This document shows positions 29,337 to 60,680 of a DNA stretch of 64,000 nucleotides, piece after piece. The position numbers and the translations under genes are program-made. This stretch comes from Macrostomum lignano. Lineage: Eukaryota. Each line of letters opens with the position of its first letter. The first letter of the stretch is position 1. Under the pieces are notes generated by a model, which did no database searches, was not told the origin of the DNA, and was given only the letters and a program-made list of their open reading frames with translations. The stretch covers positions 1-64,000 of the forward strand of contig NIVC01001942.1 of assembly GCA_002269645.1 (NCBI GenBank). The letters run 5' to 3'.

Positions 29337-29369
<33 letters not shown>

Positions 29370-29436
29370 GGCAGACACTAAGACAGAAAGACAGACAGAC
29401 AGACAGACACACACACAAACAGACAGACAGACAGAA

Positions 29437-29529
<93 letters not shown>

Positions 29530-29580
29530 GGCAGACAGACAGACAGATAGACATACAGACAGACAGACGGGCAGACAGAC

Positions 29581-29637
<57 letters not shown>

Positions 29638-32600: not shown

Positions 32601-32763
32601 CTGAGGCGAAGTTGGCGCTGATTGGCGGGGCGGAGGCCGCGGCGCCGGCGGCTTGTTGGAGCGAGGCGCCCGGCCAGCCGACTGGCCCGGCTGCTGCTGA
32701 CGGTGCAGCCCCAGGCCGTTGCTCACTGCAGCTCCGCCGGAACTGGTACCGTTTTGCTGCTGT

Positions 32764-32795
<32 letters not shown>

Positions 32796-32864
32796 CCGCT
32801 GCTGCTGCCCGTTGCGAGGCAACTCTTCAGCGGTAGCCGACTTGCGGTATCCCACTGCTGTCGC
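27233..32864 (-). CDS. RHPN: Rhophilin (HR1 + Bro1 + PDZ), first coding exon not found
   Basis: Exons complement(join(27233..27935,29126..29246,29654..30007,30826..31184,31900..32864)), phases consistent. HR1 [19 protein letters not shown]...[12 protein letters not shown], Bro1 [15 protein letters not shown]...HWFDSFTG...[39 protein letters not shown]. Confidence 0.93.
27985..28210 (-). mobile_element. SINE family C, internally deleted
   Basis: GGGGCAGAGCAGCTTAGCGG head joined directly to the CATGCC..CGATTAGAAAGTCAGGGCC body. Confidence 0.7.
28402..28834. repeat. 28-bp minisatellite (CTGAGGATCTGGGAGGCTGGCTCAGCAA), rhophilin intron
   Basis: About 15 tandem units. Confidence 0.95.
29333..29638. 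repeat. (GACA)n microsatellite
   Basis: Begins about 15 nt inside the 29653 donor. Confidence 0.97.
30066..30755. repeat. 29-bp minisatellite (GGGGAGTTGCTGAGATGCCATGGCTCAAT), rhophilin intron
   Basis: About 23 tandem units. Confidence 0.95.
31294..31598 (+). mobile_element. RTE-type LINE 3' end with (TTG)n tail
   Basis: [13 protein letters not shown]...[10 protein letters not shown]-terminal motif of RTE-clade ORFs, stop at 31529, (TTG)n tail, TSD CAAGGTT at 31287-31293 and 31599-31605. Confidence 0.8.
31606..31860. repeat. Degenerate GAGTTCAT-based repeat (also 31215-31290, split by the LINE)
   Basis: Recurring GAGTTCAT/GAGTTTAT/GAGTGAGT octamers. Confidence 0.8.
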
Positions 32865-32969
32865 CTGAAAATGGGCACGCGGAAGAGGCAGAGGTGTAGA
32901 ATAGTTAGTATGTTTCAAATGTTCTCACAAATCATTATAAACATGCGCTTACAGTTCACAGATGCAAAT

Positions 32970-34017: not shown

Positions 34018-37000
34018 TTAAACAATCGCCCTAGCTGCATTGTACTGCAGGCTGGCTTTGAACTGGTGCAGGTCTCCAGTCCAGACGATGCACTCTTCTT
34101 CGTCGCCGTCCTTGGCTTGGCTGTCGACAGTGTCTGTTGAGTAGCACAGCGGCATGGCGAATGGCTTCTTGCCAGCCCGGCCGGACACTTTCTTGGTCGC
34201 GCCTTCCGCCTTGAACAGTGTGGGGGATGAATAGTGATTATTGCAGGAGGGCTGCCAGCGCAACGCCTTCGGCGATATCGGCTCACAACCGGCGCTGAGG
34301 CCATTCTGCCCATTCCACTGACTCCTGAACACACACAAGCGCGCCAATACTGTACGCAGGCACGCAGTCATGCACACGCTCACGTGGAGTGAATAGCGGC
34401 CCTGACTGTCTAATCGTTCACACAAGCCCCAAGTGAATGAATGTGCCTGCACGCGGAATCTAACCAGGGGTCGTGGCACGAGAGTCAGAACCGTTTAATA
34501 AAGTGAGCTACTCTGCCCCTGTGTGTGACAGGAGGCTTAGAGACAGTTACGAGTATATTAAATAGCCACCTGGCAGCAGGTCGGTAATAAGTATATATTC
34601 TAATAAAAATGAGTCAGGTTTACGGGCACGAGCTTATAGCAGATGTCACCCAGTATATTAGATACAAAGTATTAGGCAGAAACCGCAGCTGGACAATTAA
34701 AGATCAAAGGTGCTAAGCTATTAACAGCACCGACTGCTTGCATCGCACCTTCCAGTGACGAATTGTTTCTGCAAACTTCGTGCCATTGAATTATTAGCAT
34801 TGAAAGCCAGTCTAGACACCTTTAAACTTGAGCTGACCCGCTCTACTGAACTCGAACCTATTCTCTACTCTGCCGAATCTACTCAGACACCCATTCTACT
34901 CTTACTTTACAAAAAAATCTACCCATTTCCACTCTACCCTACTAAAGCCTACTCAGATACACTCTACTCTACCAAAACCTATCAACATTCAATCTACTCT
35001 ACCAAAACCTATCAACATTCAATCTACTCTACCAAAATATATCCAGATTCAGTCTACCAAACCTACCAAGACGCACTCTACTCTACCAAATTCCACCAAG
35101 ACTCACTCTACTCTACCAAGACTCACTCTACTCTACCAAGACTCACTCTACTCTACTAAGAGTCAATTTACTCTAACAAAATCTACCAATACTCACTACT
35201 CTAGCAAAATCTACCAAAACTCACTCTACTCTACCAAAATCTACCCAGACTCACTCTACTCTACCAAACAAGACTCACTCTAATGTATCAAAATCTACAC
35301 AGACTCATTCTGCCAAAACCTACCAACATCCAATCTACTCTACCAAACCTACCAAGACCCACTCTACTCTATTACGAGCTATAATCTACAAAATCTACTC
35401 TACTATATAAAAGACGATGAAGCCTCTCTACCATAATCTATCCCCGATTTTACTATACTCTACCAAAACACCCAGACGCACTCTACTCTAGCATAATATG
35501 TACCAAAATCTACTCCACTCCACCAAAAGCTACAAAGATCTAAACCATGACCCAACTCACCTGAAAGGTGAATGACCGCCTGCCAGTGGAGCGCAGAGCC
35601 CGCTGATAGAACTCGATGGCCTCAGCCTTAGTAACCGAGTGCAGCAGCATCTCAGCCTCGGTGTAGTGCAGTCCAAAAGCGGCAGGCGGACAGGCCGGGC
35701 CATTGTCCAGTATCGCGCACCAGTACCGATCAGCCTGCTGAGTCATGCCGACATCCTCAACCAGCAGCAGGTCGACAAGAGACCTGGCGTAATTCGAGAA
35801 CGCCTCGTCCGACATGCCGGTCAATAGCTTGAGAAAGCGACCGCCAGTGAACTTGTCCACCCTGGCCTGCAGCTGGGCCATGCTGAACTGGTCCGCCTGG
35901 CTGTTCACCTGCACCATGAACCCGATGGCGCCGTTAGTCTGCCGACTGTCGCAGTACACTTGGTAGCCTAGCTGGTGCTTGGTGCGCAGATAGTCGTAGC
36001 ACGGCTCGGACATCATGTGCTGAAACCAGTCGGCAGGTTGGAACTTGTTTGTTTGACTACTTACAGTAGCAAAAAACTACACAGGTATGTCTAATCAGAA
36101 AGTGAGCATTCGAAAGTGCTTCCTATATAAAAACTATTGCTATTTTTGTGCCGAAAAAACAATGAAAAAGTTTATATCTCCGTGTAGTGTATTTTTCTGT
36201 TTAGGGGGTGGCCGTACCGGCCCTCTCATGTGCCAGCGACCCAGGCTCGATTCCAAGTGCAGTCACATTAATTTGGGGCTAAATTGGAATCTCGGCTTGG
36301 CTCTGCTCGTGCAATTAACGGCCTTAAGAGCCAACCCCCAAGGCGCAGTGAAGTGTACATGACTAACGATAAATAAAGTTAGGGCCGCTGTTCACTCCTG
36401 TGTGAGTGTGTGCCTGTGCGTATGACTGCGTACGTATCCGCGCGCTTGTGTGTTGATGTCGTTTAAAGTGCGCCAGGGTGCACACAGCCCCCCCTGCCTC
36501 TATAAAAAGTCCATTTGTCTGGTAAAGTCAGTCTTCAAATATTTTCTAAGAAAGCAGTTTTTCCTTGCCTAGTACTTGAAATTTGTAATGGCTAGAGAAT
36601 CTAAACCTGTAATGTTGCTTTAACTAATGCTTTTCTAATATAGAAATTAATAGAAGAAATGTGGCAGGTGTGGCAGCCAACCTTTATTAATTTGCCACCC
36701 TCCGGTCTGCTCTGCTTAACTTGCAGCGCTGGCGGTGGGGTTTCTTAGAATATGGCATATTCTATGAATAACTTTTCGGTAAATCCTTTTACAAATACAT
36801 GTACAGTCACAGTACTATGCACACTAGCAGTGCGACAGTTCCGGGATAGATTGAAAGCACACAAACTAGGCTAGCATGGCATATCATTGCCGGTGATTCG
36901 TGTATAATTTGCGACAGAATGAAACCTGAAACCGGGGCTAGTAATAGGATCTTCCACTGAATCGCAGCAGTAACAAAAAAGGGATATAAAAAGGTTCTTA

Positions 37001-40000
37001 ATCTTAATACGGATACGGAATGGAATTGAGAGGGAGTCAGCTGACTGATACTGACTGATTAAGATGATTAAACCCGGATCCCGACCGAACTCGAGGGTAA
37101 TATGTATAATGTGTTAAGCGGCGGAGCAATCAGCAGGGAAACCGTACATTTGACTAAAAGGAGGAAATTAAAGTACATTTAGACATTTTCGGAAGTACTG
37201 AGGTGAGGTGTCGCTGGGGGTACTCTAGTGAGGTACCACTGAAGGTAATCTAGTTAGGTATCTCTGGGGTCCTTTAGTAAGGTATCTCTGGGGAGGGATC
37301 TCTGGGGGTACTCTAGTGAGGTACAGTTGAAGGTACTCTAGTTAGGTATCTCTGGGGGTACTCTAGTGAGGTACAGTTGAAGGTACTCTAGTTAGGTATC
37401 TCTGGGGGTACTCTAGTGAGGTACAGTTGAAGGTACTCTAGTTAGGTATCTCTGGGTGTACTCTAATGAGGTATCTGTGGGGTTCTATAGGGAGACCTAA
37501 AAACTAAAACACCTGCCATCCAAGTTCCCATAAAAAGTAAACTTAAAAGCAATTAAGAAACGTAAAGGCTATTGCACAAACCAGCAGCAGATTCGAGATC
37601 ACGTAGTCGCGTAGAGTTGGCGGGAATTCGAACTGAAAATACTCCAACAATGCGCTATTCACGTCGCCAGATTTGAGATTCTCAACGCAGACGCCGCAGC
37701 GGCCCGGCGGCAGAGTGGCGCACGTGTTCTGCGGGAAAGGCGGGGATATCATGGAGTACACGATAGGTATTGATAGCTGTTAATCAAAAAGGAGTGGTTC
37801 ATGGAGATCTGTCTAGAAATCTGGCGTTGAAAACCACTTTTTATTTAGCAAAAAACTTCCAAAAGTCTTCCTTCATAGCCAAATGTCTTCCATTATAGCC
37901 AAATGTCTTCCCCCATAGCCAAATGTCTTCCATCATAGCCAAAAGTATTCCTTCATAGCCGATGTCTCTCTTCATAGCCATATGTCTTCCATCATAGCCA
38001 AATGTCTTCCTTCATAGCCAAATGTCTTCTTTCATAGCCAAATGTCTTCCTTCATAGCCAAATGTCTTCCTTCATAGCCAAATGTCTTCCTTCATAGCCA
38101 AATGCCTTCCTTCGTAGCCAAATGTCTTCCTTCATAGCCAAATGCCTTCCTTCGTAGCCAAATGTCTTCCTTCATAGCCAAATGCCTTCCTTCATAGCCA
38201 AATGTCTTCCATCATAGCCAAATGTCTTCCTTCATAGCCAAATGTCTTCTTTCATAGCCATATGTCTTCTTTCATAGCCATATGTCTTCCATTATAGCCA
38301 AATGTCTTCCATCATAGCCAAATGTCTTCCATCATAGCCAAATGTCTTCCTTCATAGCCAAATGTCTTCCTTCATAGCCAAATGTCTTCTTTCATAGCCA
38401 TATGTCTTCTTTCATAGCCATATGTCTTCCATTATAGCCAAATGTCTTCCATCATAGCCAAAACTATTCCTTTATAGCCGATGTCTCTCTCCATAGCCAA
38501 ATGTCTTCCTTCGTAGCAAATTTACTGCTTTTTACGAGCTATTAAATAGTATAAAACAACTAGCAACCGTTTATTGCAAAGAAATGAGACTCAAGATAGA
38601 ATCCGCTACTCCAGATTTTATATTAGGAGTTCCTTGGTTCTGGGCGCATATTTACGTAGCTAATCAATCACGGAGAAAGAAATAAAATTTAGCAATCCAG
38701 CAAAAGTGATAGCTAGTGGACTCATCAATCTGGAAATAGCGCAAAAATAGAAGAGATGCCTAATTTCAATCTTCTCTCAGCTTCTTCTCCTAGAATTTTA
38801 AAAAAGCTCATTTTTCAACGATAGTTTAACTTCTCCGCATAGGAGTTCCTGACAATCCAGAGTCCAGACCGAGGATAACTCTGCACAATTGGACAACAGA
38901 TCCGTTAGCCAATAGAACTCCTTGCTAACTCACTAGATAGCTATTATACATGGATACTGCAGTAACCATTATACAGCGTTGTAGTTAATTTCAACCGAAA
39001 AAATCTTTCATAATCAAAACGACACAGCACGAAAAGTGCAACAGCAAACAGTCATGCCGTTTGTACCCCCAACAAGAAAGATGCAGACCAACATGAGCAC
39101 AGTAGGAGGCGACGGACGCGAGGAGAAAGTGCTATCGGACAAGCGGAAGCTGATAGGCAGCGCTATTGGCGTGCTGATGCACGGCGCCATGGCTGCCACG
39201 GCCGATGCGGTTTTCGCTGCCAATTCATGCACCAGCGTCACGGGTGAGTGACGGACAGCGATTGGTTCGAATTGAGAACACATTCTTGTACGATTTAATA
39301 GAAAAATCTGTTTTAAGAAACAATTCTACAAAATGCCTTTAATTCTTCGTCCTGCAAAATTATTAAGATGGACCAGGTTCAAGAGACATTGGAGAACCTT
39401 TAAAACTACTTCATTCAAGGTCAAGTGTCTTCCTTCGTAGCCAAATGCTTTCCTTCATAGCCAAGTGTCTTCCTTCGTAGCCAAATGCTTTCCTTCATAG
39501 CCAAATGTCTTCCTTCATAGCCAAATGTCTTCCTTCATAGCCAAATGCCTTCCTTCGTAGCCAAATGTCTTCCTTCATAGCCAAATGCCTTCCTTTATAG
39601 CCAAATGCCTTCCTTCATAGCCAAATGCCTTCCTTCATAGCCAAATGTCTTCCTTCATAGCCAAATGTCTTCCTTCATAGCCAAATGCCTTCCTTCATAG
39701 CCAAATGTCTTCCTTCATAGCCAAATGTCTTCATTCATAGCCAAATGTCTTCCTTCATAGCCAAATGTCTTCCTTCGTAGCCAAATGTCTTCTTTCATAG
39801 CCAAATGTCTTCCATTATAGCCAAATGTCTTCCCCCATAGCCAAATGTCTTCCATCATAGCCAAAAGTATTCCTTCATAGCCGATGTCTCTCTTTATAGC
39901 CAAATGTCTTCCATCATAGCCAAATGTCTTCCTTCATTGCCAAATCTCTTCCTTCATAGCCAAATGTCTTTCTTCATAGCCAAATGTCTTCCTTCATAGC

Positions 40001-43000
40001 CAAATGCCTTCCTTCATAGCCAAATGTCTTCCATCATAGCCAAATGTCTTCCATCATAGCCAAATGTCTTCCATCATAGCCAAATGTCTTCCTTCGTAGC
40101 AAAATGCCTTGCTCTGTAGCCAAATGCCTTCCTTTATAGCCAAATGCCTTCCTTCATAGCCATTAAATGAATTCCAACAGAAGACCTTGAGCTCATTAAA
40201 ATGGAGCACTGGTTAACCAAATGTGTTGACAAGCAAGCATCCATCAAGCATATTTCGCATTCTATAGCAAAATATCTAATACAGCCTTCAATCTTTTTGC
40301 CCCCAGCAAGCCATTAGCCATTAGCGGTGCTCATATTTGGCTACAATTTTCGGATATTTTATTCGTGAGAAAACGAATATTGATACTAATTATCTACACT
40401 CGTAGCTATGTTCAAGGAGACACGCAAATATCATTCGATAATATATAGTAGTATATGCCAAGCTATACTCGCCTGCCCAAAATTTGCATCAGGAGTTAAA
40501 GCGAATCCCAAGCGCTATGAAAAAAATGGTTGGTTGGTAGCAACTAGTTGCGACCACACTGCTAATGTGGGCCCAAATCGCATTACACTGTAGAAAGGAA
40601 ATAAAGAATGGGAAATATTAAAGAATTTTGCTCCATTTCCCGATCCGACGTTGATTTAATATTCATAATTAATAGATCCAACCAACTTATACGCACTAGA
40701 AAGTATATTTGCATTAGATGAGGACTGGGAAACCCCACGGTAAGTAATCGAACCGATTAACTAGATTTCAGCAATTGAGACTCGCTAATCATTTCAACTA
40801 GAACCACCGCCTTTGAAGTCTAAAAAACTCTACTCTCTACTTTAGCACAATATTGCGCAGCAGCCCCCACACCACCTATTAGTTAGAATCGATTGAGAAT
40901 TGAGAATCTGGTCTCGGTTTGTCTCTATGCAAGCAGCAAGCATCCCATAGGAATCCGTAAAGATAGAAACGAAAGCTGCAAAGGAGAGCCAGACAGCAGT
41001 TGCAGTTAGTAAGATAAATAGCCCCTACGAGCGCACACTTCGTCAAGCAATGCTTTCTTATATGAGAGATGGCAAGGGAAGCTGAGCAGGCCGAGCATGT
41101 CCGGTTCGAGTGAATTGGCTAATGTACTAAATTAAGTAGCCTAGCCTAGCATTCACAGCCGGTCAGCCGTGAGGCAACGGATAGCATCCAGGCAGCATAC
41201 AAAACTTTCTTTGTCTGATCAACGGCTGATGAGAGCAATGCACTTTTAATCTATAGGCGTCTTTACTTTTGTTAACCAATCGGTCTGATGCCGTTCGTTT
41301 TGAATAGGAAATATTTGTGACACACTGAAAGATCTGGGGAGTAGCAGTGACCCAGTGAATGATCCGGACAGTATCAGTAACCCAGTGAATGATCCGGACA
41401 GTATCAGTGACCCAGTGAATGATCCGGACAGTATCAGTGACCCAGTGAATGATCCGGACAGTATCAGTGACCCAGTGAATGATCCGGACAGTATCAGTGA
41501 CCCAGTGAATGATCCGGACAGTATCAGTGACCCAGTGAATGATCCGGACAGTATCAGTGACCCAGTGAATGATCCGGACAGTATCAGTGACCCAGTGAAT
41601 GATCCGGACAGTATCAGTGACCCAGTGAATGATCCGGACAGTATCAGTGACCCAGTGAATGATCCGGACAGTATCAGTGACCCAGTGAATGATCCGGACA
41701 GTATCAGTGACCCAGTGAATGATCCGGACAGTATCAGTGACCCAGTGAATGATCCGGACAGTATCAGTGACCCAGTGAATGATCCGGATAGTATTAGTGA
41801 CCCAATGAATGATCCGGACAGTATCAGTAACCCAGTGAATGATCCGGAGAGTATCAGTGACCCAGTGAATGATCTGGACAGTACCAGTGACCCAGTGAAT
41901 GATTCGGACAGTATCAGTGTGTGAATTGGCTGTCTTATACCGATTTGAACTATACTGCCTTTTGCGTTTGGCTGCTCAATTTTAGCTTACCACTATAGAC
42001 CCTCCCCCTCCACTGAACTGATCGATTTCTGTTTTTACGTACAGTACTTCTTCGCAATGTACATCGTTCGTCCTAACTACATGTACTCAGTTCTATAATA
42101 CAATATAAAGGACCAACGCGTTAGTTAAGAAACGCTGTTTACAACTTGCGGCTCAAGCCAATTCAATCGCTTCGTCTCAATCTCAATTCATCACAATGGC
42201 GACGAGGACTTTTGGCCAAATTCCAGAACTTTCAGCTGAATCAGACCTTGAAATCTACGCTGAGCGCATGAACCAATATTTCATATGCAACAAAGTTGAG
42301 ACTGCCGAGGCCAAGCGTGCTATCTTTCTTACTGCCATTGGTGAGAAGTACTACAAATTGCTTCGCGACTTGTGTCAGCCACAGAAACTGACTCAAAAAT
42401 CCTACGAAGAGCTGCAGGACATACTAAAGAAGCATTGCTCGCCCGAACCTTCGGAGATCGCCGCACGTTTCAAATTTCAGCAACGTCTTCAGCAAGATGG
42501 TGAATCTTTCGCTAACTTCTTGGCAGGACTAAAAAACGCTGCAAACCATTGCAAGTTTGGCGAGTCCCTTCAGGAGCGACTTCGAGATCAGTTTTTGTTC
42601 GGAATGAGAAGCGACAATTTCCGCTCTAAGCTACTCGAGAGTTCGGATCATTCGTACGCTGGGCTGATCAAACTGGCCTTGGACCTCGAAGCTGCTCACA
42701 AATCTTCAAGCGAGATGGCGCACACTTCAGCAACCAATCGAGTCAGCGCGAATCCATCAGTGGCACGCCCGAGAGCACAGTACAACATCAGCCAACACTC
42801 TGGTCCCGCTGGATCAGCATCCAAGCCAGGGACCTGCGACAGCTGTGGAGGTCCACATTCGCGTCAGAACTGTAAATTCCGTAATTCGAAATGCCATGCT
42901 TGCGGGAAGGTTGGCCACATTAAGAAGGTTTGCAGGTCAGCAAAATCTGTGAAACTCCTGGAGGAGAATGAAACCGGGTCTCAGTACGACGAAGAAAACT

Positions 43001-46000
43001 ACGAGGAAGAGCCAATATTTCATGTCTCAATGACTTCCAAGTCCCCGATTCTGGTGCCTCTGCAAATCGAGGAAGTGCAATCTCATTTTGAGCTGGACAC
43101 AGGATCTGCTGTAAGTCTCGTTCCTAAGGCATTCTATGATAGCCATCTGTCTCATCTGCGACTGCATCCGTCCAAGACGACTCTGCGAACCTACACGGAC
43201 CAGGAGTTCTCTCCGATCGGAGAAGTAACAGTGAAGGTCACTTACGAAGGGCAGGAAGCTTCTCTGCCGCTACTCGTGGTGTCTGAAGGCAGCGCTCGAC
43301 TCCTGGGACGCAACTGGCTAACCGTCATCCGCCTAGAGTGGCCTCGCTTGACAGCACCCGTCAACTCGTTGATCGCAGCACCTAACGATATGGCTACTGA
43401 GCTGGTCCGTCAGTTTCCGGATGTCTTCGCCGAGGGTCTCGGTAAGTATCGCCTCAGTGAAGTCGACCTTCATTTACAAGAAAATGCTACGCCAAGGTTT
43501 TACAAGGCGCGACCGATTCCCTATGCTCTGCGTGAGACCGTCGATTTAGAGCTTCAGCGCATGGAATCAGAAGGGGTCATCACTCCAATAGCGACTTCTC
43601 AATGGGCTGCCCCAATTGTGCCAGTAGTAAAGAAGGACGGGTCTGTACGAATCTGCGGAGATTACAAGTGCACATTCAATTAGGTCGCAAAGCAAGAGCA
43701 CTACCCGCTGCCGAGGATCGAAGATTTATTTGCGAGACTGGGTGGCGGCCACAAATGGAGCAAACTCGACCTGGCAAAGGCATTTCTGCAGCTCCCAATA
43801 TCAGAAGACAGCAAACAGTACCTCGTTATCAACACTCAACGTGGACTGTTCAAGGTGAACCGCCTGCCATTCGGTATCTGCTCGGCCAGTGCAATTTTTC
43901 AACGCATCCTTGACAGTCTGCTCGGGCATCTCAACGGCGTCCAGGTTTATCAGGACGACATCCTGGTTACCGGGTCTTCACTGGCGGCTCACAAAGAAAA
44001 TCTGCTGCAAGTCCTGCACAAGCTTCAAGAGGCCGGACTGCGTCTCAACGTCGCCAAGTGTGCTTTCTTCCAAGACTCCATCGACTATCTGGGCCACCGA
44101 ATTGACCAACACGGGCTGCGGCCGCTCGAGAGCAAGGTCGACGCCGTTCAGAACGCGCCGGCTCCGAAAGACGTATCTCAGCTGCGATCCTATCTGGGAA
44201 TGCTGACGCATTACGCCAAGTTTCTTCCCAATTTGGCATCAGTCGTGGCGCCGCTTAATCAGCTCTTGTCGAAAGGCGTCAGCTGGCTTTGGAGCGACCG
44301 CGAGAACGAAGCCTTCCAAGCATCGAAGCGAATGCTGCTCGAATCAAAAGCTCTGATGCACTTTGACCCAAATCTGCCGATTCGTCTCGAGTGCGACGCT
44401 TCCGCGTACGGCATTGGCGTGGTTCTCAGTCACCGGGTGGGCGGTCAGGATCACGCGATCGCATTTGCTAGCAAGTCGCTGACTTCAGCCCAGCGAAACT
44501 ATTCTCAGCTAGATAAGGAGGCACTAGCCATAATCTACGGTGTCCAACGCTTCCACCAATTCCTCTATGGGCGGCACTTTACGATTGTCACTGACCATCA
44601 GCCTCTGCTGGGATTGCTGGGCCCAGACAAAGAGATTCCGACACGTGCGGCTGCCAGGATGCAGCGATGGGCCATCCGTCTATCTGGATACCGGTACGCC
44701 ATGGAGTTCAGGCCCACCCAGAAGCACAGCAATTGCGACTCTCTTTCTCGATTGCCTCTAAAAGGAAACTTTATTGAAGAAGAGGCGGTGCACTCGCTCA
44801 CGCTCGAGGAGGACTCTTCCATTGCTGTGACTGCGGCTTTGGTCGCCAAAGCAACTCTGGCTGACCCTATACTGTCCAAGCTGCTTCGCCTTCTGCAATC
44901 CGGAGAGCGACTATCCGGCAAAGAATTTCCAGAGTTCGCTCATCAGCAAAACGAGATGACCATCGAAGCCGGCTGCTTACTCTGGGGGACTCGCGTTATA
45001 ATCCCGGAGGCCCTGCGCAAGGCCGTCCTACAGGAACTCCATTTGGCTCACACCGGTGCCAGTCGCATGAAAGCCCTGGCACGCAGTTTTGTTTGGTGGC
45101 CAGGGCTGGACAAGGACTTGGAGCAGTTGGCTAGAACATGCGAAACCTGCAAGGCTCACCAGTCTGATCCAGCCAAAGCTCCGGTGCATCCTTGGATATT
45201 TCCCAGCGAACCTTGGAGCAGAATTCACTTGGACTTTGCTGGTCCTGTTAATGGGCGAGTCTACCTTGTCATCATGGACGCTCACAGCAAATGGCCCGAG
45301 GTTCGTCTAGTCAAGGATACTTCAGCAGACAGCACCATCGCACATCTCTGTGAAATCTTCAGCCGTCTGGGCCTACCAAGAATTATTGTCTCCGACAACG
45401 GGCCTCAATTCATTTCCAGGGAATTCGCAAGCTTTACACGCAGCAACGGCATTCGGCATGTCACGTCAGCGCCTTACCATCCTGCTACGAACGGTCAAGC
45501 TGAAAGATTTGTACAAACACTGAAGCTGCACATCAGGAAATCCGGTCACTCGGCCGCTGCTTTGCAACGCTTTCTCTTCGCCTACAGGGTAACGCCGCAT
45601 TCGACTACAGGCACCTCTCCCAGCGAACTGCTTCTGGGACGTCGGCTGCGCTCCAGACTGGACCTTCTGCGGCCATCTCTAGTAGACCAAGTGCGCGATC
45701 GGCAAGAGGCTGCCGCTGAGTCCCAGCGCCGCACCCGGTTCTTCGGGATCGGCGACAATGTTCGAGTGAAAGGATTCGGCAAGGAATCCGGCTGGCTGCC
45801 TGGATTGGTCGTCGCGGCGTCGCAACGGAACTACGATGTTCGAGTTGGCACCAGCATCGTCCGGCGGCACGTTGACCAGATGCTGCCTGATTCGGCGCAG
45901 CCTCCGCCATCCGCCGCTGACTCTCAACACCTCGGCACCAGCATCTCGACTCCATCGTCGGCGCCTCCGGCTCTAGATGTTCTGAGCCCCGCGGCTGTCT

Positions 46001-49000
46001 CCGAGCCCGCTATTCAGCCACCATCGGAGGAAAGAGCCGCGGTCCCCGCAGGCCTGGCAGACAAGGCGGCAGCCGCGGACGCGGACGTACCTGACCAGTT
46101 GCCAGAGGGTGCGACCCGCCGATACCCGCCTCGAATTCGGTCATGTCCAGAGCGACTTCAAGTGGGGGTGTGATGAGTGACTGTGCGGAAGCTGACAATG
46201 ATCTTGAACTGACTTTTCGCAAATTCTCCTGTCTTTCATGCAACCCATTATTACGTATGTTTCTCCAATACAAATTATTGATTCACTACTAATTCTAGTT
46301 TTCGACAATGCAATATTTCGCTATTTTGTTCGACACAATTTTATTTCCTTACTTTTCATCTGCTCTGCAATTGTGTTTGCTAATTCGATTGTTTTCCAAT
46401 ACTACAATACTACATGTACGCTATCGTCGATTCGCTTTTCGTAAAAATTCGTCTCATTGATCCCACTTCCCCTTGGGGAGGGAAGTGTGAATTGGCTGTC
46501 TTATACCGATTTGAACTATACTGCTTTTTGCGTTTGGCTGCTCAATTTTAGCTTACCACTATAGACCCTCCCCCTCCACTGAACTGATCGATTTCTGTTT
46601 TTACGTACAGTACTTCTTCGCAATGTACATTGTTCGTCCTAACTACATGTACTCAGTTCTATAATACAATATAAAGGACCAACGCGTTAGTTAAGAAACG
46701 CTGTTTACAACTTGCGGCTCAAGCCAATTCAATCGCTTCGTCTCAATCTCAATTCATCACACAGTGACCCAGTGAATAATCCGGACAGTATCAGTGACCC
46801 AGTAAAGCATCTGGTGAGTATCAGTGACCCAGTGAATGACCCGGACAGTACAGTGACCCAATAAAGCATCTGATGAGTTATCAGTGACCCATTGAATGAT
46901 CCGGACAGTATCAGTGATCCAGTGAATGATCCGGACAGTATCAGTGATCCAGTGAATGATCCGGACAGTATCAGTGACCCAGTGAATGATCCGGACAGTA
47001 TCAGTGACCCAGTGAATGATCCGGAAAGTATCAGTGACCCAGTGAATGATCCGGACAGTATCAGTGACCCAGTAAATGATCTGGGGAGTAGCAGTGACCC
47101 AGTGAATGATCCGGACAGTATCAGTGACCCAGTTAATAATCTGGAGAGTATCAGTGACCCAGTGAATGATCCGGACAGTATCAGTGACCCAGTGAATGAT
47201 CCGGACAGTATCAGTGACCCAGTGAATGATCCGGACAGTATCAGTGACCCAGTGAATGATCCGGACAGTATCAGTGACCCAGTGAATGATCCGGACAGTA
47301 TCAGTGACCCAGTGAATGATCCGGACAGTATCAGTAACCCAGTGAATGATCCGGACAGTATCAGTGACCCAGTGACTGATCTGGACAGTATCAGTGACCC
47401 AGTGAATAATCCGGGCAGTATCAGTGACCCAGTTAATAATCTGGAGAGTATCAGTGACCCAGTGAATGATCCGGACAGTATCAGTGACCCAGTGAATGAT
47501 CCGGACAGTATCAGTGACCCAGTGAATGATCCGGACAGTATCAGTGACCCAGTGAATGATCCGGACAGTATCAGTGACCCAGTGAATGATCCGGACAGTA
47601 TCAGTGACCCAGTGAATGATCCGGACAGTATCAGTGACCCAGTGACTGATCTGGACAGTATCAGTGACCCAGTGAATAATCTGGAGAGTATCAGTGACCC
47701 AGTGAATGATCCGGACAGTATCAGTGACCCAGTGAATGATCCGGACAGTATCAGTGACCCAGTGAATGATCCGGACAGTATCAGTGACCCAGTGAATGAT
47801 CCGGACAGTATCAGTGACCCAGTGAATGATCCGGACAGTATCAGTGACCCAGTGAATGATCCGGACAGTATCAGTGACCCAGTGACTGATCCGGACAGTA
47901 TCAGTGACCCAGTGACTGATCTGGACAGTATCAGTGACCCAGTGAATAATCTGGAGAGTATCAGTGACCCAGTGAATAATCTGGAGAGTATCAGTGACCC
48001 AGTGAATGATCCGGACAGTATCAGTGACCCAGTGAATGATCCGGACAGTATCAGTGACCCAGTGAATGATCCGGACAGTATCAGTGACCCAGTGAATAAT
48101 CTGGAGAGTATCAGTGACCCAGTGAATAATCTGGAGAGTATCAGTGACCCAGTGAATGATCCGGACAGTATCAGTGACCCAGTGAATGATCCGGACAGTA
48201 TCAGTGACCCAGTGAATGATCCGGACAGTATCAGTGACCCAGTGAATGATCCGGACAGTATCAGTGACCCAGTGAATAATCTGGAGAGTATCAGTGACCC
48301 GACTGAAAAGTCCAGGATTTTTTACTCTGACGGCTAAGCGCAAAACCTTTTGCAAGCACTTTTTCGGTAGCTGAATAGCTAGGCTTATGAAATGAATAAC
48401 AGCTGAAGGAGTACAGAAGCTGAGCCGGAGTTGAGTTGGAAATCACGGCCAGGTCTGATAGTGCCAAAATGAGGCTGTGTGGCCTTGCCAGGGGCTGGCG
48501 CGGGAGTCGGGGAAAGAGGAACTGCATAGCGCGCAATCGAGCGTAGCGTAAGCGAATTAGAATTCGGCAACACTGGGACTGTAAGCATTCAAGCGTTGGA
48601 TCGGAAGGGTTTGAGAAAAATCCCATTAACTGTCCATCGCGGGCCTGAGTTAACACACCCCGGGGGGGGGGGCACAAAGCTTTATTCATACTTTCAGACT
48701 TTTATTATAACTAATAGACTGAATAATTATGCGGAGTAGAATTAAAAATAGGTCCCAATAACTTTAGAAGCCGCACGAGGCCAGTATTATTTTTCTATAT
48801 TATAGTTTCCTCAAATTCCATTATGCGAAGCCACTCGCTCTCAATAGTTTTCGCCCCCCGCAACTTTCCGCACTGCCTAAGAATCCCATTATGCCCTTGT
48901 GCTGCAGCCGCGGTGCTTCTCTATGCTTTTGCAGTAGGAAAATATTCCAAGCTACATTTTAGGAAAAAATCGTGTTCCCCTCCTAACAACTGACGGACTG

Positions 49001-52000
49001 GACTTAAAGTGCAGACGGGCCTAACAACCAAGATGTTTATAAAAGTTTATAAAAGAGTTCACAAAAAGTGTCAAACCTTCGGGTTGCTGCCTCCACCCGC
49101 CCCTCCCTTTTCCATGCCGACTGCCGCCTGTTGAAGTGACAGACAGAAGCAAGTCACCAAAGTGTAAGGAAAAATCTACCCCCTACCACAAAGCCAACTG
49201 AAACACTGAAATGCAAATTTGTTAGAGCGCCAGAGCGGTATTAGAGGACCCGGGCTCGAATCCCAGGAGTTTAGCTGCGCGAATAACAACCGTTAATGTC
49301 AATCTTAAAGGAAGATGCTAGAATGCTCAGGTGAGACGGCACCCTCCTGACTTGCCACCCTCCGTAGGATTTAGATAATCCACATGTTGCACCGACAGTG
49401 ACCGGAAGAAAGCAGTTGCAGAAATTAATTATGATTTATTTTTAAACCGAATTTCTATAACAATATGATTGAATACAAAGCATACGCTCGTATATCAGAT
49501 ACCGTCACCAGCATCTAAATATCTCAATTCCATATGCCTATGTATAGTTCAGAACATGATATCTAATCCGAATCCTAATTTCTTCAATTTCAACTCGATC
49601 CCAGATCCCATCCATCAAATATTAATCCATAGTATCTAGACTAGAAGGCAGCTCAGCGGTAAAAACGCGATCGACTCACGCGCTAGGACCCCTGGTTCGA
49701 TTCCGTGCGCAAACATTCCTTTGGGGCTTCGGTGCACGAAGTTTTGGGGTTGTCGTCCTATTTACAACCATGAAGGCCAACCCCCCAAGGCACAGAGAGC
49801 GTACATGCCTGACGATTAGAAAGTCAGGGCCTCTGTACAGCCTGTGAGCGTGTGTTTGAGTACGTGTCGGCGTACAGTATTGGCGCGCCTTTTTTGATTA
49901 CGCCTTCTTCCCCAATTGGACCAGATGTGCAACCGACAACACAGCCGCAGCCATTGCGCGGCGCATCTGAAGGCTGCGTACGGCTGTTCAGTCCAAGGAC
50001 TTTGGTCGCCACACACACCCTCAATTACCCCAGCTAATGCTGGCACCCATTTTACAGCTGGATGAACTGAAGCAATGCAGAGTCAAGTGTCTTGCTCAAG
50101 GGCACAAATTGTTCCAGTGGGATCGGGAATCGAACCCCTGACCTTAATCGTGAGTCCGACGCTCTAACTACTGGGCTACAGCCCCTAACCACTATGGGGG
50201 GGCTTTTATGTGCTCAAGAGTCATTGTAAGTGGGATAGGCAGAATTACCTCAGCGCTGGTTGTGGGACAGTGTCGCCGAAGGCATTGCGCCAGGGTGCCC
50301 ACAAGCAGCCTACAACCAGAGATAGGCCTAAATTTCCCCATTCCATCCCTCCCACACGCAGGCCTGGGTTTCGCTACGTGCGCAAGCAGCGCCCTGACCG
50401 CCGGACTAAGCGTGGCCCTGAGCTGCCTAAGCGGCCGACTGTTTCTCAATGCCCGTCTACAGCTGGGCGCGTGCGCAGCGCACGGCCTGGTGCTGGCCAC
50501 CGGCCTGGCATTCGTATTGGCCAGTTTCCTAGCCCAGGTCGGCTCACACAGGCAATGCGTTGCTATGCTAGTTGGCTCAGCTGCTGTTAGCCTACTGGTC
50601 TGCCTGCCCAGCTGCATTGTGGCCGCGGCTGTGCTAGTCAGCTGGTACAGGGAGCGCGGAACGCTGGCCTAGCGCATCGGCTACTTTGAAAATGGCATTC
50701 GTTTATCATTGAAACTTTTACTGACACTCAAAATGAGATTTGTTATTCAAGCAAATTGTATGCTTCGTATGCAATTCAGGGCTAAGTATCTGTTGTCTGG
50801 GTGGCTTGGCCATAGACTATAGACAATCAAGCCGAGGCCGAGATCTATGGTGCCGATCTCAGTTTGATTGTCCGAGTCGATTGTCTATGGTCAAATCATC
50901 CCAGTACCCATGCAGCCAGAAACAGAGTTACGTTAGGGCTGACTATTGATTAGAAATTGCTAAGACATTTTTTACCTGAAAGGGCTGCGGGCACCCTGAC
51001 GCAACGCCTTCGGCGACATCATCCCACACACCAGCGCTGACGGCAATTCTGCCCATTCTGCTGACTTTTGAGCCCTCATTTAATAATCTTGTTACGAATA
51101 CTTTAAGCAAATTTTGCACGCCATGCCTCTATATGAAGATCGCATATGTATTCTAATATTATGTATATATGTACTGTACCGCATCACACAGAGCTTTGTA
51201 GATTTGTTTGGCTGAGAGAATAATTTTTAAGTCACACTCTGAAATCCTACTTGCAGTAGAATAGACGAAAAGTGTATTAAAATCTCTGCATGAAATTTGC
51301 TACTCAATTTGATTAGCGACAGTACTGCAAAACTTATGACATAGCATAATTAGCATAATATTTTCATGTAGGTATGCGGTATGTTCTTTTGATTTCTTTT
51401 TTAAATATGCTACTTTTTCAGGAGTGCGGCCACAAAGGCGTGCGCTCTGATACCTCCCCCCTCTGTGGCCACTCGTGACCGGAGCGAGGTGTATTTTGTT
51501 ATTGTTTTTAAATGCCTAACTGATGACAGCTGATAGAAAATCAATATTGACACTTTTCTTCAAAACTAAATTACCAAGTAGTAACTGTACTCTCTCACCT
51601 GGCAGTTGGCAACTTCGCAGCCGGGATCCAGGACGGACACAATATAACGAAAGTAGTTCTTTGCGTCCTGTCAGCAGGGAAATAATTATAAGGAAAGCTC
51701 TTCTAAGCCGATCATAACACACAGAGTGGGAAAATCAAACAAATAATCCAGTGCATATTGAGCTATGGAGTGGCTAATTAAATAAAAATGGTGTGCTCAT
51801 TATATATACCTGTTGTGGCTAACTAATTATACATACGTGCTGTGCTAATTAAATTTACTTGTGGCCAATTCATTATAATTGATGTGGCTGGTTGAATATA
51901 CCTGATGTGGCTGATTAATATACCATCGTGGCTGATTAATATACCTGATGTGGCTAATTAATATACCTGATGTGGCTGATTAATATACCTGATGTGGCTG

Positions 52001-55000
52001 ATTAATATACCTGATGTGGCTGATTAATATATGATAGTGGCCGATTAATATACCTGATGTGGCTGATTAATATATCATTGTGGCTGATTAATATACCTGA
52101 TGTGGCTGATTAATATACCTGATGTGGCTGATTTATATACCTGATGTGGCTGATTAATATACCTGATGTGGCTGATTAATATACCTGATGTGGCTGGTTG
52201 AATATACCTGATGTGGCTGATTAATATACCTGATGTGGCTGATTAATATACCTGATGTGGCTGATTAATATACCTGATGTGGCTGATTAATATACCTGAT
52301 GTGGCTGATTAATATACCATTGTGGCTGATTAATATACCATTGTGGCTGATTAATATACCTGATGTGGCTGATTAATATACCTGATGTGGCTGATTTATA
52401 TACCCGATGTGGCTGATTAATATACCTGATGTGGCTGGTTGAATATACCTGATGTGGCTGATTAATATACCTGATGTGGCTGATTAATATACCTGATGTG
52501 GCTGATTAATATACCTGATGTGGCTGATTAATATACCTGATGTGGCTGATTAATATACCATTGTGGCTGATTAATATACCTGATGTGGCTGATTAATATA
52601 CCTGATGTGGCTGATTTATATACCTGATGTGGCTGATTAATATACCTGATGTGGCTGGTTGAATATACCTGATGTGGCTGATTAATATACCTGATGTGGC
52701 TGATTAATATACCTGATGTGGCTGATTAATATACCATTGTGGCTGATTAATATACCTGATGTGGCTGATTAATATATGATAGTGGCCGATTAATATACCT
52801 GATGTGGCTGATTAATATATCATTGTGGCTGATTAATATACCTGATGTGGCTGATTAATATACCTGATGTGGCTGATTTATATACCTGATGTGGCTGATT
52901 AATATATACCTGATGTGGCTGATTAATACACCTGATGTGGCTGATTAATATACCTGATGTGGCTGATTAATATACCTGATGTGGCTGGTTGAATATACCT
53001 GATGTGGCTGATTAATATACCTGATGTGGCTGATTAATATACCTGATGTGGCTGATTAATATACCATTGTGGCTGATTAATATACCTGATGTGGCTGAAT
53101 AATATATGATAGTGGCCGATTAATATACCTGATGTGGCTGATTAATATACCATTGTGGCTGATTAATATACCTGATGTGGCTGATTAATATACCATTGTG
53201 GCTGATTTATATACCCGATGTGGCTGATTAATATACCTGATGTGGCTGATTAATACACCTGATGTGGCTGATTAATATACCTGATGTGGCTGATTAATAT
53301 ATGATTGTGGCTGATTAATATACCTGATGTGGCTGATTAATATACCTCATGTGGCTGATTAATATACCTGATGTGGCTGATTAATATACCTGATGTGGCT
53401 GATTAATATACCTGATGTGGCTGATTAATATACCTGATGTGGCTGATTAATATACCTGATGTGGCTGATTAATATACCATTGTGGCTGATTAGTATACCA
53501 TTGTGGCTGATTAATATACCATTGTGGCTGATTAATATACCTGATGTGGCTGATTAATATACCTGATGTGGCTGATTAATATACCATTGTGGCTGATTAA
53601 TATACCTGATGTGGCTGATTAATATACCTGATGTGGCTGATTAATATACCATTGTGGCTGATTAATATACCTGATGTGGCTGATTAATATACCTGATGTG
53701 GCTGATTAATATACCTGATGTGGCTGATTAATATACCATTGTGGCTGATTAATATACCTGATGTGGCTGATTAATATACCATTGTGGCTGATTAATATAC
53801 CTGATGTGGCCGATTAATATACCTGATGTGGCCGATTAATATACCTGATGTGGCTAATTAATAATTAATATTGCCGTTTTAACTGATTAAATATACCCGT
53901 TATGGCTGACTGAATATACCTGATGTGGTTAGTAAATACGCCTGATGTGGATAGGACAAAAGCACCTGTATTTGCCAGTATATACCAAAAACACATGGCT
54001 TGACAAATCTATCACAAGCATTTATTCATTAACCCACCTCGGGTCCATGGTTGCCATGCACGTAGACTTTAATAGATAGCTTTGATAGCAGCCGCTTGTG
54101 AAACTGGCCAACTTGGGCCAGGGTTAGCGACTCCAAGCAGGCCAGCTGATCGTTGCGCAGGTAGCGATCCCGTTCCAACAGGTACAGCCGCATCTCGCTG
54201 GTATAATGGAAAAGTACAAGAAAAACACACACGCTCAGTTTAGGCTACTTGCAGTAGTTAGATGCGACTCAACTGAACAACATTTTTATGCTACTTATTG
54301 CCGAAGCCATTAAATATATACATCCTGAGCCAAAAATAGGTATTTTTGATTAACTATTAAGCAGAACTGGGTCCAACAGAGGCAAAAAACAGCAGAACGA
54401 TACACTCACAAATGCACAATTTCTTAGTTCTTCTACTTCAGTTGAGTTTATTGGCAACGGTTGGTCTAATTCCACTGACACAGCAATCAAGCTGGGCCAG
54501 CAGCCCCGCCCAACAACAAACAATTAGCCATAAGCTATTGGAATCAAATCGCAAGTCGCTTTATATTAGCTTGCTGATTGCTGAAATTCTGCAAGGTCTT
54601 GCTGCCCTTTCCTTGAAGAGAACTTTACCCATGGCGTCCTATCAGTCCGGCGCCCTTTCTCTCCGGTGCCATTTCTCTCTGGTGCCATTTCTCCCCGGTG
54701 CCAATTCACTACACCGCCAATTCCCTACACCGCCAATTCACTACACCGCCAATTCACTACATCGCCAATTCACTACATCGCCAATTCACTACATCGCCAA
54801 TTCACTACACCGCAAATTCACTACATCGCCAATTACTACATCGCCAATTCACTAAACCGCCAATTCACTACATCGCCAATTCACTACACCGCCAATTCAC
54901 TAAACCGCCAATTCACTACATCGCCAATTCACTACATCGCCAATTCACTACACCGCCAATTCACTACATCGCCAATTACTACATCGCCAATTCACTACAC

Positions 55001-58000
55001 CGCCAATTCACTAAACCGCCAATTCACTACATCGCCAATTCACTACACCGCCAATTCACTAAACCGCCAATTCACTACATCGCCAATTCACTACATCGCC
55101 AATTCACTACACCGCCAATTCACTACATCGCCAATTCACTACACCGCCAATTCACTACACCGCAAATTCACTACATCGCCAATTCACTACACCGCCAATT
55201 CACTACACCGCCAATTCACTACACCACCAATTCACTACACCGCCAATTCACTACACCGCAAATTCACTACAGCACCGAGTATATTGGGTTTCATAAAACT
55301 TACGCTATAAGCCGGGCTGGAGTAAGCAGCGAATTCACCATCATCTTTCGCACCTCCTCTTTGGCTAATCCAAAGTTAAGCCGCTGATCCATCAAGCTGA
55401 GCATCTCGCCAAATTGCTTCAGCTTTCGCCCGATGGTCGCATAGAGATTCTGAAATGAGTCGGCGAAGAACCGGAGTTGACAGTAGCGTCCTCACAAAAG
55501 GACTATATATAGTACATTTAGTAACTAAATAAAAACATAGCAGTAATGACAATGACAAACGAAAACTTACTAATGATATTTCTAACTGATTTTGGCTTGC
55601 GTTCCTTATACTAAGTAACTATGACTAGTAACTAGTTGCTTGGCTAGCAACAAACAGTGAAAGCAACGAAAAAGTCTTAATAGCAGGCATAAGGTAGCAC
55701 ATGGCACGGGAATTGCATATGCATGAGGCCCCACAGTTAAACAGTGCAGAATACATTTAAACAGCTCTTTAATTTAGTGGAATCGGAAAGGTAAACAGCT
55801 GCAGGCCTTCTATTCATGCTGCTTCAGAAATACATGCTGCAATACAGTTTCATTCCAACCAGTGCATTCCAACCAGTGCATTCCAACCAGTTCATTCCAA
55901 CCAGTTCATTCCAACCAGTGCATTCCAACCAGTGCATTCCAACCAGTGCATTCCAACCAGTGCATTCCAACCAGTGCATTCCAACCAGTTCATTCCAACC
56001 AGTGCATTACAACCAGTGCATTCCCAACCAGTGCATTCCAACCAGTGCATTCCAACCAGTGCATTCCAACCAGTGCATTCCAACCAGTGCATTCCAACCA
56101 GTGCATTACAACCAGTGCATTCCAACCAGTTCATTCCAACCAGTGCATTACAACCAGTGCATTCCAACCAGTTCATTCCAACCAGTGCATTACAACCAGT
56201 GCATTCCCAACCAGTGCATTCCAACCAGTGCATTCCAACCAGTGCATTCCAACCAGTGCATTCCAATTACAGCTTGTCATTGTAGCCCTCAACACGAATC
56301 ACTTACAAACAGCTTGTCATTGTAGCCTTCAACTCGAATACGAATAGAAAATGGCTCTACGTATAGAACTTCGTACCTATAAATTTTGTGATGGGGGTTT
56401 ATGTTAGTAGATAAACGCAAACGGGAAAACCGACTGCTGCATAACAAGTCTCGTAGAAAGCTTGAAAATCAGTCACATACCACAGATAGGCCTCGACGGC
56501 GGCGTACAACTCCTTGCTCAACTGAAAATCGAACATGTACAGCCACAGGTGCACCAGTGTTGAGCTGAAATGTACAGGTGCTCATTCTTGGATTGCACCA
56601 CCTGGCACGGCTCCACATTCTCAAACCATGCCGTTACCCTCCCACATTCCCAGACCATGCCGTCACCCTCCCACATTCCCAGACCATGCCGTCACCCTCC
56701 CACATTCCCAGACCATGCCGTCACCCTCCCACATTCCCAGACCATGCCGTCACCCTCCCACATTCTCAGACCATGCCGTCACCCTCCCACATTCACAGAC
56801 CATGCCGTCACCCTCCCACATTCTCAGACCATGCCGTCACCCTCCCACATTCCCAGACCATGCCGTCACCCTCCCACATTCTCAGACCATGCCGTCAGCC
56901 TCCCACACTCTCAGACCATGCCGTCACCCTCCCACATTCCCTGACCATGCCGTCACCCTCCCACATTCTCAGACCATGCCGTCACCCTCCCACATTCCCA
57001 GACCATGCTGTCACCCTCCCACATTCTCAGACCATGCCGTCACCCTCCCACATTCACAGACCATGCCGTCACCCTCCCACATTCCCAGACCATGCCGTCA
57101 CCCTCCCACATTCCCAGACCATGCCGTCACCCTCCCACATTCTCAGACCATGCCGTCAGCCTCCCACATTCTCAGACCATGCTGTCACCCTCCCACATTC
57201 CCAGACCATGCTGTCACCCTCCCACATTCTCAGACCATGCCGTCACCCTCCCACATTCCCTGACCATGCCGTCACCCTCCCACATTCTCAGACCATGATG
57301 TCACCCGCCTACATTCTCAGACCATGCTGTTCTGTTACCCTCCCACATTTTCAGATCATACCGTCAATTTGATTACCAGGCAAAAATGCTACTTACTTTT
57401 CTAGCGACTCACAAATAACAGGAGAGTCTAAGCTGACTCGAACGACGGCTGAAGTGAAATCCAAAGTGTCAATCAAATTAATAAATTGATTTTTATATAG
57501 TATATAGGAAAGCATCGCACAGAAAGCATTGCAAAAAAAAGCGAACCTCTTGGCGTCTTGAACTTGCGGTCCTTATAATAGAACAGGGGCCCGAACCGGT
57601 CCACGGCTGGGTCGCCAACGAGAAGGCGAACTGGGTACTGCGGGACAACAGGTTTCGTTCGGAGCCTACATGAGATAGTTAGCTTTCGACTTGCGAAGTA
57701 GGAGTATAGACAAATACTCGTAAATGTATCAAGGCTCATGGGATGTCGGAGTTCATGTCTGATTCTCTTAACCTCATAATTGAAAGATACCTGAAATCTT
57801 ATTGGCGATGCCTGGATAAAAGGCTGGATTCTCATTGAGATACCCGGATTCTAAGTGGAGATACCAGGATTTTTTAATGGAGATAGCTAGATTCTAAGTG
57901 GAGATAGCTGGATTCTAAGTGGAGATAGCTGGATTCTAAGTGGAGATAGCTGGATTCTTAGTGGAGATAGCTGGATTCTAAGTGGAGATAGCTGGATTCT

Positions 58001-59938: not shown

Positions 59939-60553
59939 TCGCTAGCCATAGCTCATAGGAATGCAAATTGGAGTGAAGCGCAAATTTAAGCAAGGCTTTT
60001 TTACTCTTTTTCACATAGTACCCGATTTCCTATGGAAACGTATGCGCCAGCACAGCACTATTAGCCATTTCGTTGCGATTGGAGCCTGCTAAAAATAGCA
60101 GGTTTTCCATAGGTAATTGCTAATATTCTCAGTGGGCAGAGCGGCTAAGATTGTACAACAATAGGCCTAGTATTTTTCTTCTTGTTTTATTCAGTAAAGT
60201 GTATCGTTTCTTTAAGGACGAGGTATCGGGGTTTGTGCATTTGTATTTGAAGGCTGGCCTATTTGCCTCTATAATACATTGAAACCGATAGGATGCTATG
60301 GTTTTATCAATACAAAACTAAAATTTTCGTTGCCAATATGAGACGGCAGTAGCGCTGAAACTGAAATGTTGGAATTCATTATTTAGTATAGTGTTACTAA
60401 GCTTTGCAAAGATTTTTTGTTTAGTTTATTTAGAGTTTCTGACCAATTTGACGGTTTTAAAAACCTATAAGGAAATGCTTTTTGGCTATAACTAAAAACT
60501 GGGAGGTAACTGCATGTAACTATGAAGGCATAAAGGAAAGGCAGATAGACAGG

Positions 60554-60679: not shown

Positions 60680-60680
60680 C

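Follow-up and report, generated by a model that had tools for sequence, protein, structure and literature searches.

The 64-kb window analysed here (positions 1 to 64,000 of contig NIVC01001942.1 in assembly GCA_002269645.1 of the flatworm Macrostomum lignano) carries on its plus strand a two-exon coding sequence (CDS) that very probably belongs to a real, conserved gene, presumably with a transcript of its own. The predicted product is a small membrane protein with four helices, whose termini would both be cytosolic, and the gene lies antisense within an intron of an M16 peptidase gene. Direct reading of the letters joins 39054-39243 to 50362-50672 (+), which gives 501 nt after splicing and a predicted product of 166 amino acids (aa). 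An earlier note, made from this DNA alone, had pointed to two isolated plus-strand islands rich in guanine and cytosine (GC), and the contrast is indeed clear, with 58% GC in exon 1 and 64% in exon 2 compared with 33-42% in the flanks.

Coding structure, codon usage and homologs

The proposed gene is made up of the following parts, with coordinates given for the whole window.

38522-39053, plus strand: 5′ flank of exon 1, unique in the window, from the end of the left 20-bp satellite (38521) to the start codon
39054-39243, plus strand: coding exon 1, 190 nt, aa 1-63 and base 1 of codon 64; charged N-terminus (MPF...REEKV..DKRKL) and helix 1
39244-50361, plus strand: intron of the candidate, 11,118 bp, phase 1; donor GTGAGT at 39244-39249, pyrimidine tract and CAG up to 50361
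50362-50672, plus strand: coding exon 2, 311 nt, aa 64-166 and the stop codon; helices 2-4 and a C-terminus ending in WYRERGTLA

Exon 1 has two in-frame ATGs (39054 and 39081) and an upstream in-frame stop at 38982. The peptide proposed in the earlier note began at the second ATG (MQTNM); it is identical to ours over the shared part, but the closest homolog (see below) supports the MPF start at 39054, so that nine residues, MPFVPPTRK, precede MQTNM. The exon ends in a consensus phase-1 donor (ACGG/GTGAGT, the slash marking the exon border here and below), as had been read before, although its final exon base is 39243 and not the 39244 originally given. The string GGTGAGT occurs only 15 times in the 64 kb when both strands are counted. 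Because a TGA lies in frame two codons beyond the donor, the open reading frame (ORF) of exon 1 cannot run on unspliced. At the other end of the intron, direct reading confirmed the phase-1 acceptor at 50361: a pyrimidine-rich tract followed by CAG spans 50328-50361, the site reads ttccccattccatccctcccacacgcag/G, and exon 2 opens at base 50362. Among all AGs between 50150 and 50450, that at 50360 alone both fits the phase and is preceded by a strong pyrimidine tract (0.8). The CDS closes with a TAG ending at 50672. The unique stretch of approximately 530 bp upstream of exon 1 may hold the gene's own promoter and 5′ untranslated region.

Openness of a frame is no evidence of coding here, because three of the six frames are open over exon 2; exon 1 is in addition overlapped by an 89-aa antisense ORF. 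A synonymous codon-usage score, trained on approximately 1,000 codons from Pfam-verified exons of the window, is +0.28 bits/codon for the proposed frame (+0.31 for exon 2) and -0.12, -0.21 and -0.08 for the overlapping frames, while the ORFs of a Gypsy-type retrotransposon lying in the intron score approximately 0 and -0.17. By this measure the candidate ranks 4th among the 176 ORFs of at least 80 codons, and it is only the proposed frame, among the overlapping ones, that has host-like synonymous codon usage. In this frame the GC content of third codon positions (0.70) exceeds that of second positions (0.54), and a blastn comparison of the window with itself found each of the two islands to be single-copy.

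A word-indexed protein search with the spliced product returned no relatives, whereas an exhaustive phmmer (HMMER) search with the same query, covering 1.84 billion representative proteins, gave as top relative a 141-aa protein of M. lignano (P0001, UniRef100_A0A1I8G810), in which residues 1-140 align to residues 1-165 of the query (E 5.8e-23). Common to both proteins are the initiator MPF, the motifs REEKVxxDKRKL, AAD, SCT, LPxCIxAAA and WxRxRG, and the C-terminal end, and identity amounts to 49% between exon 1 and aa 1-60 of A0A1I8G810 and to 41% between exon 2 and its aa 59-140. In composition-adjusted BLASTP comparisons with this protein, calculated for a search space the size of the entire library, E values of 6e-9 for exon 1 alone, 5e-11 for exon 2 alone and 2e-29 for the full product were obtained. 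When A0A1I8G810 was searched against the window by tblastn, it matched 39054-39236 and 50385-50666 and no other place; it thus maps to both islands, and therefore both islands belong to one protein. The entry sits in one 90% cluster with one member in M. lignano and has been named automatically as 'G_PROTEIN_RECEP_F1_2 domain-containing protein', a G-protein-coupled receptor (GPCR) label that looks like a false-positive profile match on a short hydrophobic protein. A literature search for the UniProt accession A0A1I8G810 found no paper. The gene had previously been called undescribed, which holds in that it is uncharacterised but not in the strict sense, as this automatically named homolog was already in UniProt.

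The second relative is a 125-aa ORF (P0004) in an ENA metagenome contig, ERZ25070786:ctg121051l (locus L001, 3017-3424). When extended upstream in frame, it can be aligned to aa 36-162 of the candidate with 28% identity (tblastn E 2.9e-15, for that contig alone), and the ORF is contiguous and ungapped at the candidate's exon junction (NSCTSVTG/LGFATC versus NRCARIYGFGWAAG). Unlike A0A1I8G810, this probable homolog thereby fixes the splice point. The contig has 35% GC and no nucleotide similarity to the window, so the likeness is one at the protein level, and P0004 is probably a homolog from a eukaryote in the metagenome. The N-terminal exon was not found within 3 kb upstream of the L001 ORF, and M16 peptidase exons were not found near it. 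Lack of a conserved homolog, or two exons drawn from different transcripts, had been named beforehand as outcomes that would speak against the gene; instead, A0A1I8G810 covers both exons and the L001 ORF spans the junction without a gap.

In the alignment of the three sequences, the invariant columns include D51 (helix 1), C59, R89, F114, F119, C129-x-A131-M132, P146, W158 and R162. The three proteins thus share the Asp of AAD in helix 1, a Cys that follows this helix, the Arg of loop 2, C-x-A-M before helix 4, a Pro within helix 4 and a Trp at the end of that helix. The candidate and A0A1I8G810 belong to a real, small and uncharacterised family, of which P0004 is a probable member. A scan of JGI metagenomes added no further relatives of the candidate. 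Several other matches and readings were discarded. An Elysia tandem-repeat protein (P0002) and a metagenome repeat protein (P0003) had composition-adjusted E values far above 1 and were regarded as repeat or composition artefacts, and a weak tblastn match at 21363-21587 of the window is broken by a stop and gaps and overlaps an ORF on the opposite strand. A single-exon reading, in which a 154-aa ORF starts from the ATG at 50208, was also rejected, since its upstream third is a repeat copy that is covered by neither homolog; the apparent extension of the ORF up to this ATG arises because repeats at 49801-50303 supply that sequence.

Predicted topology and family of the protein

Kyte-Doolittle hydropathy delimits four hydrophobic segments in the candidate protein (33-48, 72-92, 98-125 and 128-159), and four are likewise seen in the L001 relative. 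An AlphaFold2 model built from the three-sequence alignment also has four helices, at 20-56, 65-87, 94-120 and 127-161, separated by loops of 6-10 residues. The four hydrophobic helices with short loops described in the earlier note are therefore reproduced by hydropathy and by this model, whose confidence is low. The peptide is rich in Ala, Leu, Val, Ser and Gly. Lys and Arg are distributed unevenly, with seven before helix 1, none in loop 1, two Arg in loop 2, one in loop 3 and two Arg in the C-terminal tail. Under the positive-inside rule, positively charged flanks face the cytosol, and the clustering of positive charges before helix 1, in loop 2 and in the C-terminal tail suggests that the N- and C-terminus are both cytosolic.

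The absence of a recognised family, noted before, was upheld by each of the searches. No Pfam family matched the candidate protein at E values up to 10, and for A0A1I8G810 and P0004 nothing beyond noise below the threshold was obtained (BRI3, E 0.03). Noise was likewise all that a profile search of PDB sequences returned. The Foldseek comparison that had been proposed as a check was run against PDB and gave nothing at E 1e-3 or better, which is consistent with the same conclusion; its top matches were V-ATPase c subunits, LTC4 synthase and Orai (E 0.36-2, template modelling (TM) score approximately 0.3-0.5), that is, generic four-helix membrane bundles.

Several known families were considered individually. 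The likeness to MS4A proteins suggested earlier extends to helix count and orientation but not to family membership, as no match to the MS4A/CD20 profile (PF04103) appeared at E up to 10. Tetraspanins (PF00335) are distinguished by a large second extracellular loop with a CCG motif, and neither occurs here, all loops being 6-10 residues long; a Pfam match is absent as well. With 141-166 aa, three or four hydrophobic segments and no 7tm match in Pfam, the proteins do not qualify as class A GPCRs, which have seven transmembrane helices. The proteolipid c subunit of V-ATPase/F-ATPase (PF00137) was found by Foldseek at E 0.36 and a TM-score of 0.49, with no Pfam match. Helix 4 of the candidate (aa 127-161) contains no Asp or Glu in the membrane span, and its earliest acidic residue, E161, is in the tail. 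The IFI6/IFI27 family (ISG12; PF06140) was a candidate in view of its Ala/Gly/Ser-rich composition, and none of the three proteins matches it in Pfam at E up to 10.

The host intron, its repeats and the neighbouring genes

The gene that surrounds the candidate was identified from minus-strand ORFs at 60905-61814 and 35540-36016, which carry the Pfam domains Peptidase_M16_C, M16_M and PqqF-like_C_4, and from the candidate host exons, whose concatenation gave a PDB alignment with insulin-degrading enzyme over its residues 664-917 (E 1.3e-14). These matches identify the host as a predicted M16 peptidase gene of the nardilysin/insulin-degrading-enzyme-like type. The host exons that border the intron and the repeats that fill it are as follows.

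About 37591-37729, minus strand: host exon at the 3′ border of the host intron; acceptor cccgcag/AAC, from direct reading and the insulin-degrading enzyme alignment
37859-38521: left array of a 20-bp satellite, unit CCAAATGTCTTCCTTCATAG, upstream of exon 1 (Tandem Repeats Finder)
39422-40162: intronic array of the 20-bp satellite, unit CCAAATGTCTTCCTTCATAG and orientation as in the left array (Tandem Repeats Finder)
41317-41918: 30-bp satellite, left part (Tandem Repeats Finder)
41919-46761, plus strand: Gypsy-type long terminal repeat (LTR) retrotransposon inserted in the 30-bp satellite; LTRs at 41919-42195 and 46485-46761
46762-48300: 30-bp satellite, right part (Tandem Repeats Finder)
49801-50303: interspersed repeats just upstream of the acceptor, with a copy resembling a short interspersed nuclear element (SINE) at 49894-50190 inside a second repeat (49801-49888 and 50208-50303) (blastn of the window against itself)
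51599-51666, minus strand: host exon at the 5′ border of the host intron, ctgacag/GAC...CAG/gtgaga, which fits its place in the insulin-degrading enzyme alignment

The host intron thus covers 37730-51598 (-), that is, 13,869 bp with consensus splice sites, and the candidate CDS (39054-50672, +) lies wholly within it and overlaps no host exon, which is the arrangement of a nested gene. This agrees with the earlier description of an antisense gene in a 13.8-kb NRDC intron, the host being NRDC/IDE-like among M16 peptidases. The further nesting also held, since the 11.1-kb intron of the candidate contains the 30-bp satellite and the Gypsy element, so that the host encloses the gene, the gene the satellite and the satellite the LTR element.

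The Gypsy element is young, as its LTRs differ by 2 mismatches in 277 nt (99% identity); the target duplication is apparently CAGTG. Its ORF at 43855-46173 has Pfam domains for reverse transcriptase (RT), RNase H and integrase. The gag-pol frame is broken between approximately 43684 and 43854, where one ORF ends at 43683 and the next starts at 43855 in another frame, and this second ORF includes, besides RNase H and integrase, only positions 117-205 of the RVT_1 profile (the second half of RT). The 20-bp satellite flanks both sides of a unique block of approximately 900 bp, comprising exon 1 and the region upstream of it, and this block looks like an interruption of a single 20-bp array, whose left part starts only approximately 130 bp from the host acceptor at 37730.

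Other copies of the SINE-like repeat, which is approximately 280 bp long, were found at 5496-5776, 58791-59064, 62819-63065 and 62002-62205 (-), with 87-92% identity; it contains a tRNA-like stretch that was called by neither the tRNA scan with ARAGORN nor the Rfam scan, both of which returned nothing for the entire window. The second repeat family has other copies at 28002-28178, 4460-4549 and 34258-34417. Inverted partial copies of it (50235-50303 and 50986-51056, 86% identity) flank exon 2 and may represent two independent insertions. Nearly every intron in the window has its own long minisatellite array, with periods of 14-43 bp, up to 90 copies and 89-97% matches, for example at 7554-7880, 8426-9307, 13069-14458, 28436-28839, 30067-30756, 51880-53863, 54700-55271, 55851-56266, 56613-57366 and 57823-58230, and much of the non-coding DNA consists of tandem repeats.

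The host peptidase (60492-61814, -) is very divergent, with Pfam M16 matches of only E 1e-12 to 1e-15. Its 303-aa exon is abutted by a (CAGA)n microsatellite (60542-60842) that keeps the reading frame open, and with this exon as query no protein was found at E 1e-20 or better, a strict cut-off, among 5.8 billion clusters. Other genes on the minus strand include a rhophilin-like gene (HR1, BRO1 and PDZ domains) at 27233-32918 and a voltage-gated-type channel exon (Ion_trans) at 3224-3934. A 337-aa ORF at 19929-20942 (-), situated where GC reaches 53%, is without a match in Pfam and without an exact one in the contig collection; it may encode a mobile-element protein, to which ORFs at 21203-21983 (-) may also belong.

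Competing explanations and relation to known systems

If the gene is real, the unique 530 bp upstream of exon 1 may contain a promoter that drives its transcription, and its intron would once have been short and later inflated by two satellites, SINE-like copies and the recent Gypsy insertion. The protein might then serve as a non-enzymatic structural or accessory membrane subunit, a tentative suggestion based on how small it is, on the shortness of its loops and on the polar residues in its membrane-spanning part. A more elaborate version would make it the founding properly modelled member of an unrecognised family of very small four-helix proteins limited to flatworms and their relatives, which lines a proteolipid-like ion- or proton-conducting oligomer and whose conserved nesting couples its expression with that of the nardilysin-like gene; in such an oligomer the pore would be lined by the Asp of helix 1, His/Tyr of helix 3 and the Pro of helix 4. 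We consider this whole combination improbable.

A number of observations weigh against a functional two-exon gene. The closest homolog, A0A1I8G810, is itself an unreviewed computational gene model with three hydrophobic segments, and it is without 12 aa exactly at the junction and without 12 aa further on; because the former gap sits at the junction, this protein leaves the exact splice point unfixed. The two gaps suggest mis-placed splice sites in its gene model. At library scale the metagenome relative is borderline, with E values of 8.7e-4 by phmmer and, by BLASTP, of 6e-4 for the ORF with its extension and 1.0 for the protein as called. The AlphaFold2 model has a mean predicted local distance difference test (pLDDT) of 60.5 and a predicted TM-score (pTM) of 0.39, and searches of family, structure and context gave no match supporting any function. 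Downstream of the stop codon, the canonical AATAAA is absent and the earliest ATTAAA is approximately 600 nt off, at 51276. Finally, expression could suffer from an 11-kb intron that is packed with satellites and carries a young retroelement.

The last two points also fit an intact-looking but silent relic (a recent pseudogene or unexpressed copy). In that case the gene was shut down, too recently for its ORF to decay, either when satellites, SINE-like copies and the Gypsy insertion enlarged its intron to 11 kb or when satellites expanded around exon 1. The few differences between the Gypsy LTRs, the enclosure of exon 1 and its 530-bp upstream block on both sides by one 20-bp satellite, and the absence of the candidate protein from a collection of 15 billion proteins fit with such a history. 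However, no damage is seen in the ORF, in its start and stop or in either splice site, codon usage is still host-like, and large satellite-filled introns of this kind are the norm in the window, including in the clearly conserved host gene, while absence from the protein collection is uninformative, since no protein of the window was found there, exact look-ups of five of its ORFs being without a match. A silent relic is judged improbable. A chance or compositional artefact, in which GC-rich, stop-poor DNA mimics a gene and the M. lignano entry is an equally spurious model on related non-coding or repeat DNA, would account for the three open frames over exon 2, for the antisense ORF over exon 1 and for an Ala/Leu/Val/Ser/Gly-rich peptide whose composition produces spurious matches such as the two rejected repeat proteins. 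It is very improbable in view of the match to A0A1I8G810: the E value is still 2e-29 after composition adjustment, collinearity extends from the starting Met to the final residues, and each exon alone gives a significant match. The metagenome relative, from 35%-GC DNA without nucleotide similarity, also argues against an artefact, as do the restriction of host-like codon usage to the proposed frame and the single-copy state of both islands. The place of the exons among intronic repeats could alternatively be explained if a mobile element carried the gene as a passenger or accessory, and there are some hints in this direction: exon 2 is bracketed by the partial inverted repeat copies, the 900-bp block with exon 1 interrupts the satellite array as an insertion would, and a weak transposase helix-turn-helix ORF occurs in L001, 8.5 kb away. 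Nevertheless, 11 kb separate the two exons, neither of which has a second copy in the window, M. lignano has only one 90% cluster with one member, and no transposase, terminal repeats or target-site duplication delimits a unit containing both exons. A passenger gene is the least probable of these explanations.

With a real two-exon gene as the preferred reading, the finding is real but ordinary: a new member joins an uncharacterised family, and its genomic arrangement is a common one. As both nested antisense genes and small membrane proteins restricted to a lineage are frequent, no new question for biology arises. If expression is confirmed, a correctly modelled member with defined start codon, two exons and four helices would be added to a family of small membrane proteins whose sole database representative is otherwise a shorter, probably mis-modelled and mis-named flatworm entry (A0A1I8G810). 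The case also illustrates the value of exhaustive profile search, which can recover short genes for hydrophobic proteins even where very long introns full of repeats divide them and a word-indexed search fails.

Compared with its relatives, the candidate is collinear with A0A1I8G810 from the initiator MPF to the C-terminal RxRG-xL-x at 42-49% identity, whereas A0A1I8G810 is 25 aa shorter and, owing to its two 12-aa gaps, has three hydrophobic segments and not four, which may be a gene-model artefact. The P0004/L001 protein resembles it in four-segment hydropathy, in ADxV in helix 1 followed by NxC, in RQCVAM before helix 4 and in the Pro and Trp of helix 4, but has only 26-28% identity, comes from DNA of 35% GC and seems to have an intron approximately 30 codons earlier. 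Small four-helix proteins of known families (MS4A/CD20, MARVEL, claudin/PMP22, proteolipid c, MAPEG/LTC4 synthase and Orai) are similar in size (approximately 150 aa), helix count and probably cytosolic ends; none of them is a significant match, the best Foldseek values being E 0.36 and a TM-score of approximately 0.5 for a low-confidence model. The proteolipid c subunit differs in addition by its essential Glu, which has no counterpart in helix 4 of the candidate.

Opposite-strand nested genes are well represented in other animals, such as EVI2A, EVI2B and OMG, which are nested in an intron of NF1. In Drosophila, approximately 10% of genes take part in nested structures (PMC3814207), and nested genes typically arise via the insertion of short genes into long introns (PMC5174743). 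The arrangement in the M. lignano window is like that of known nested opposite-strand genes in that a short gene lies inside one long host intron with no exon overlap, and it differs from them in that the candidate itself has an 11-kb intron with further nested elements.

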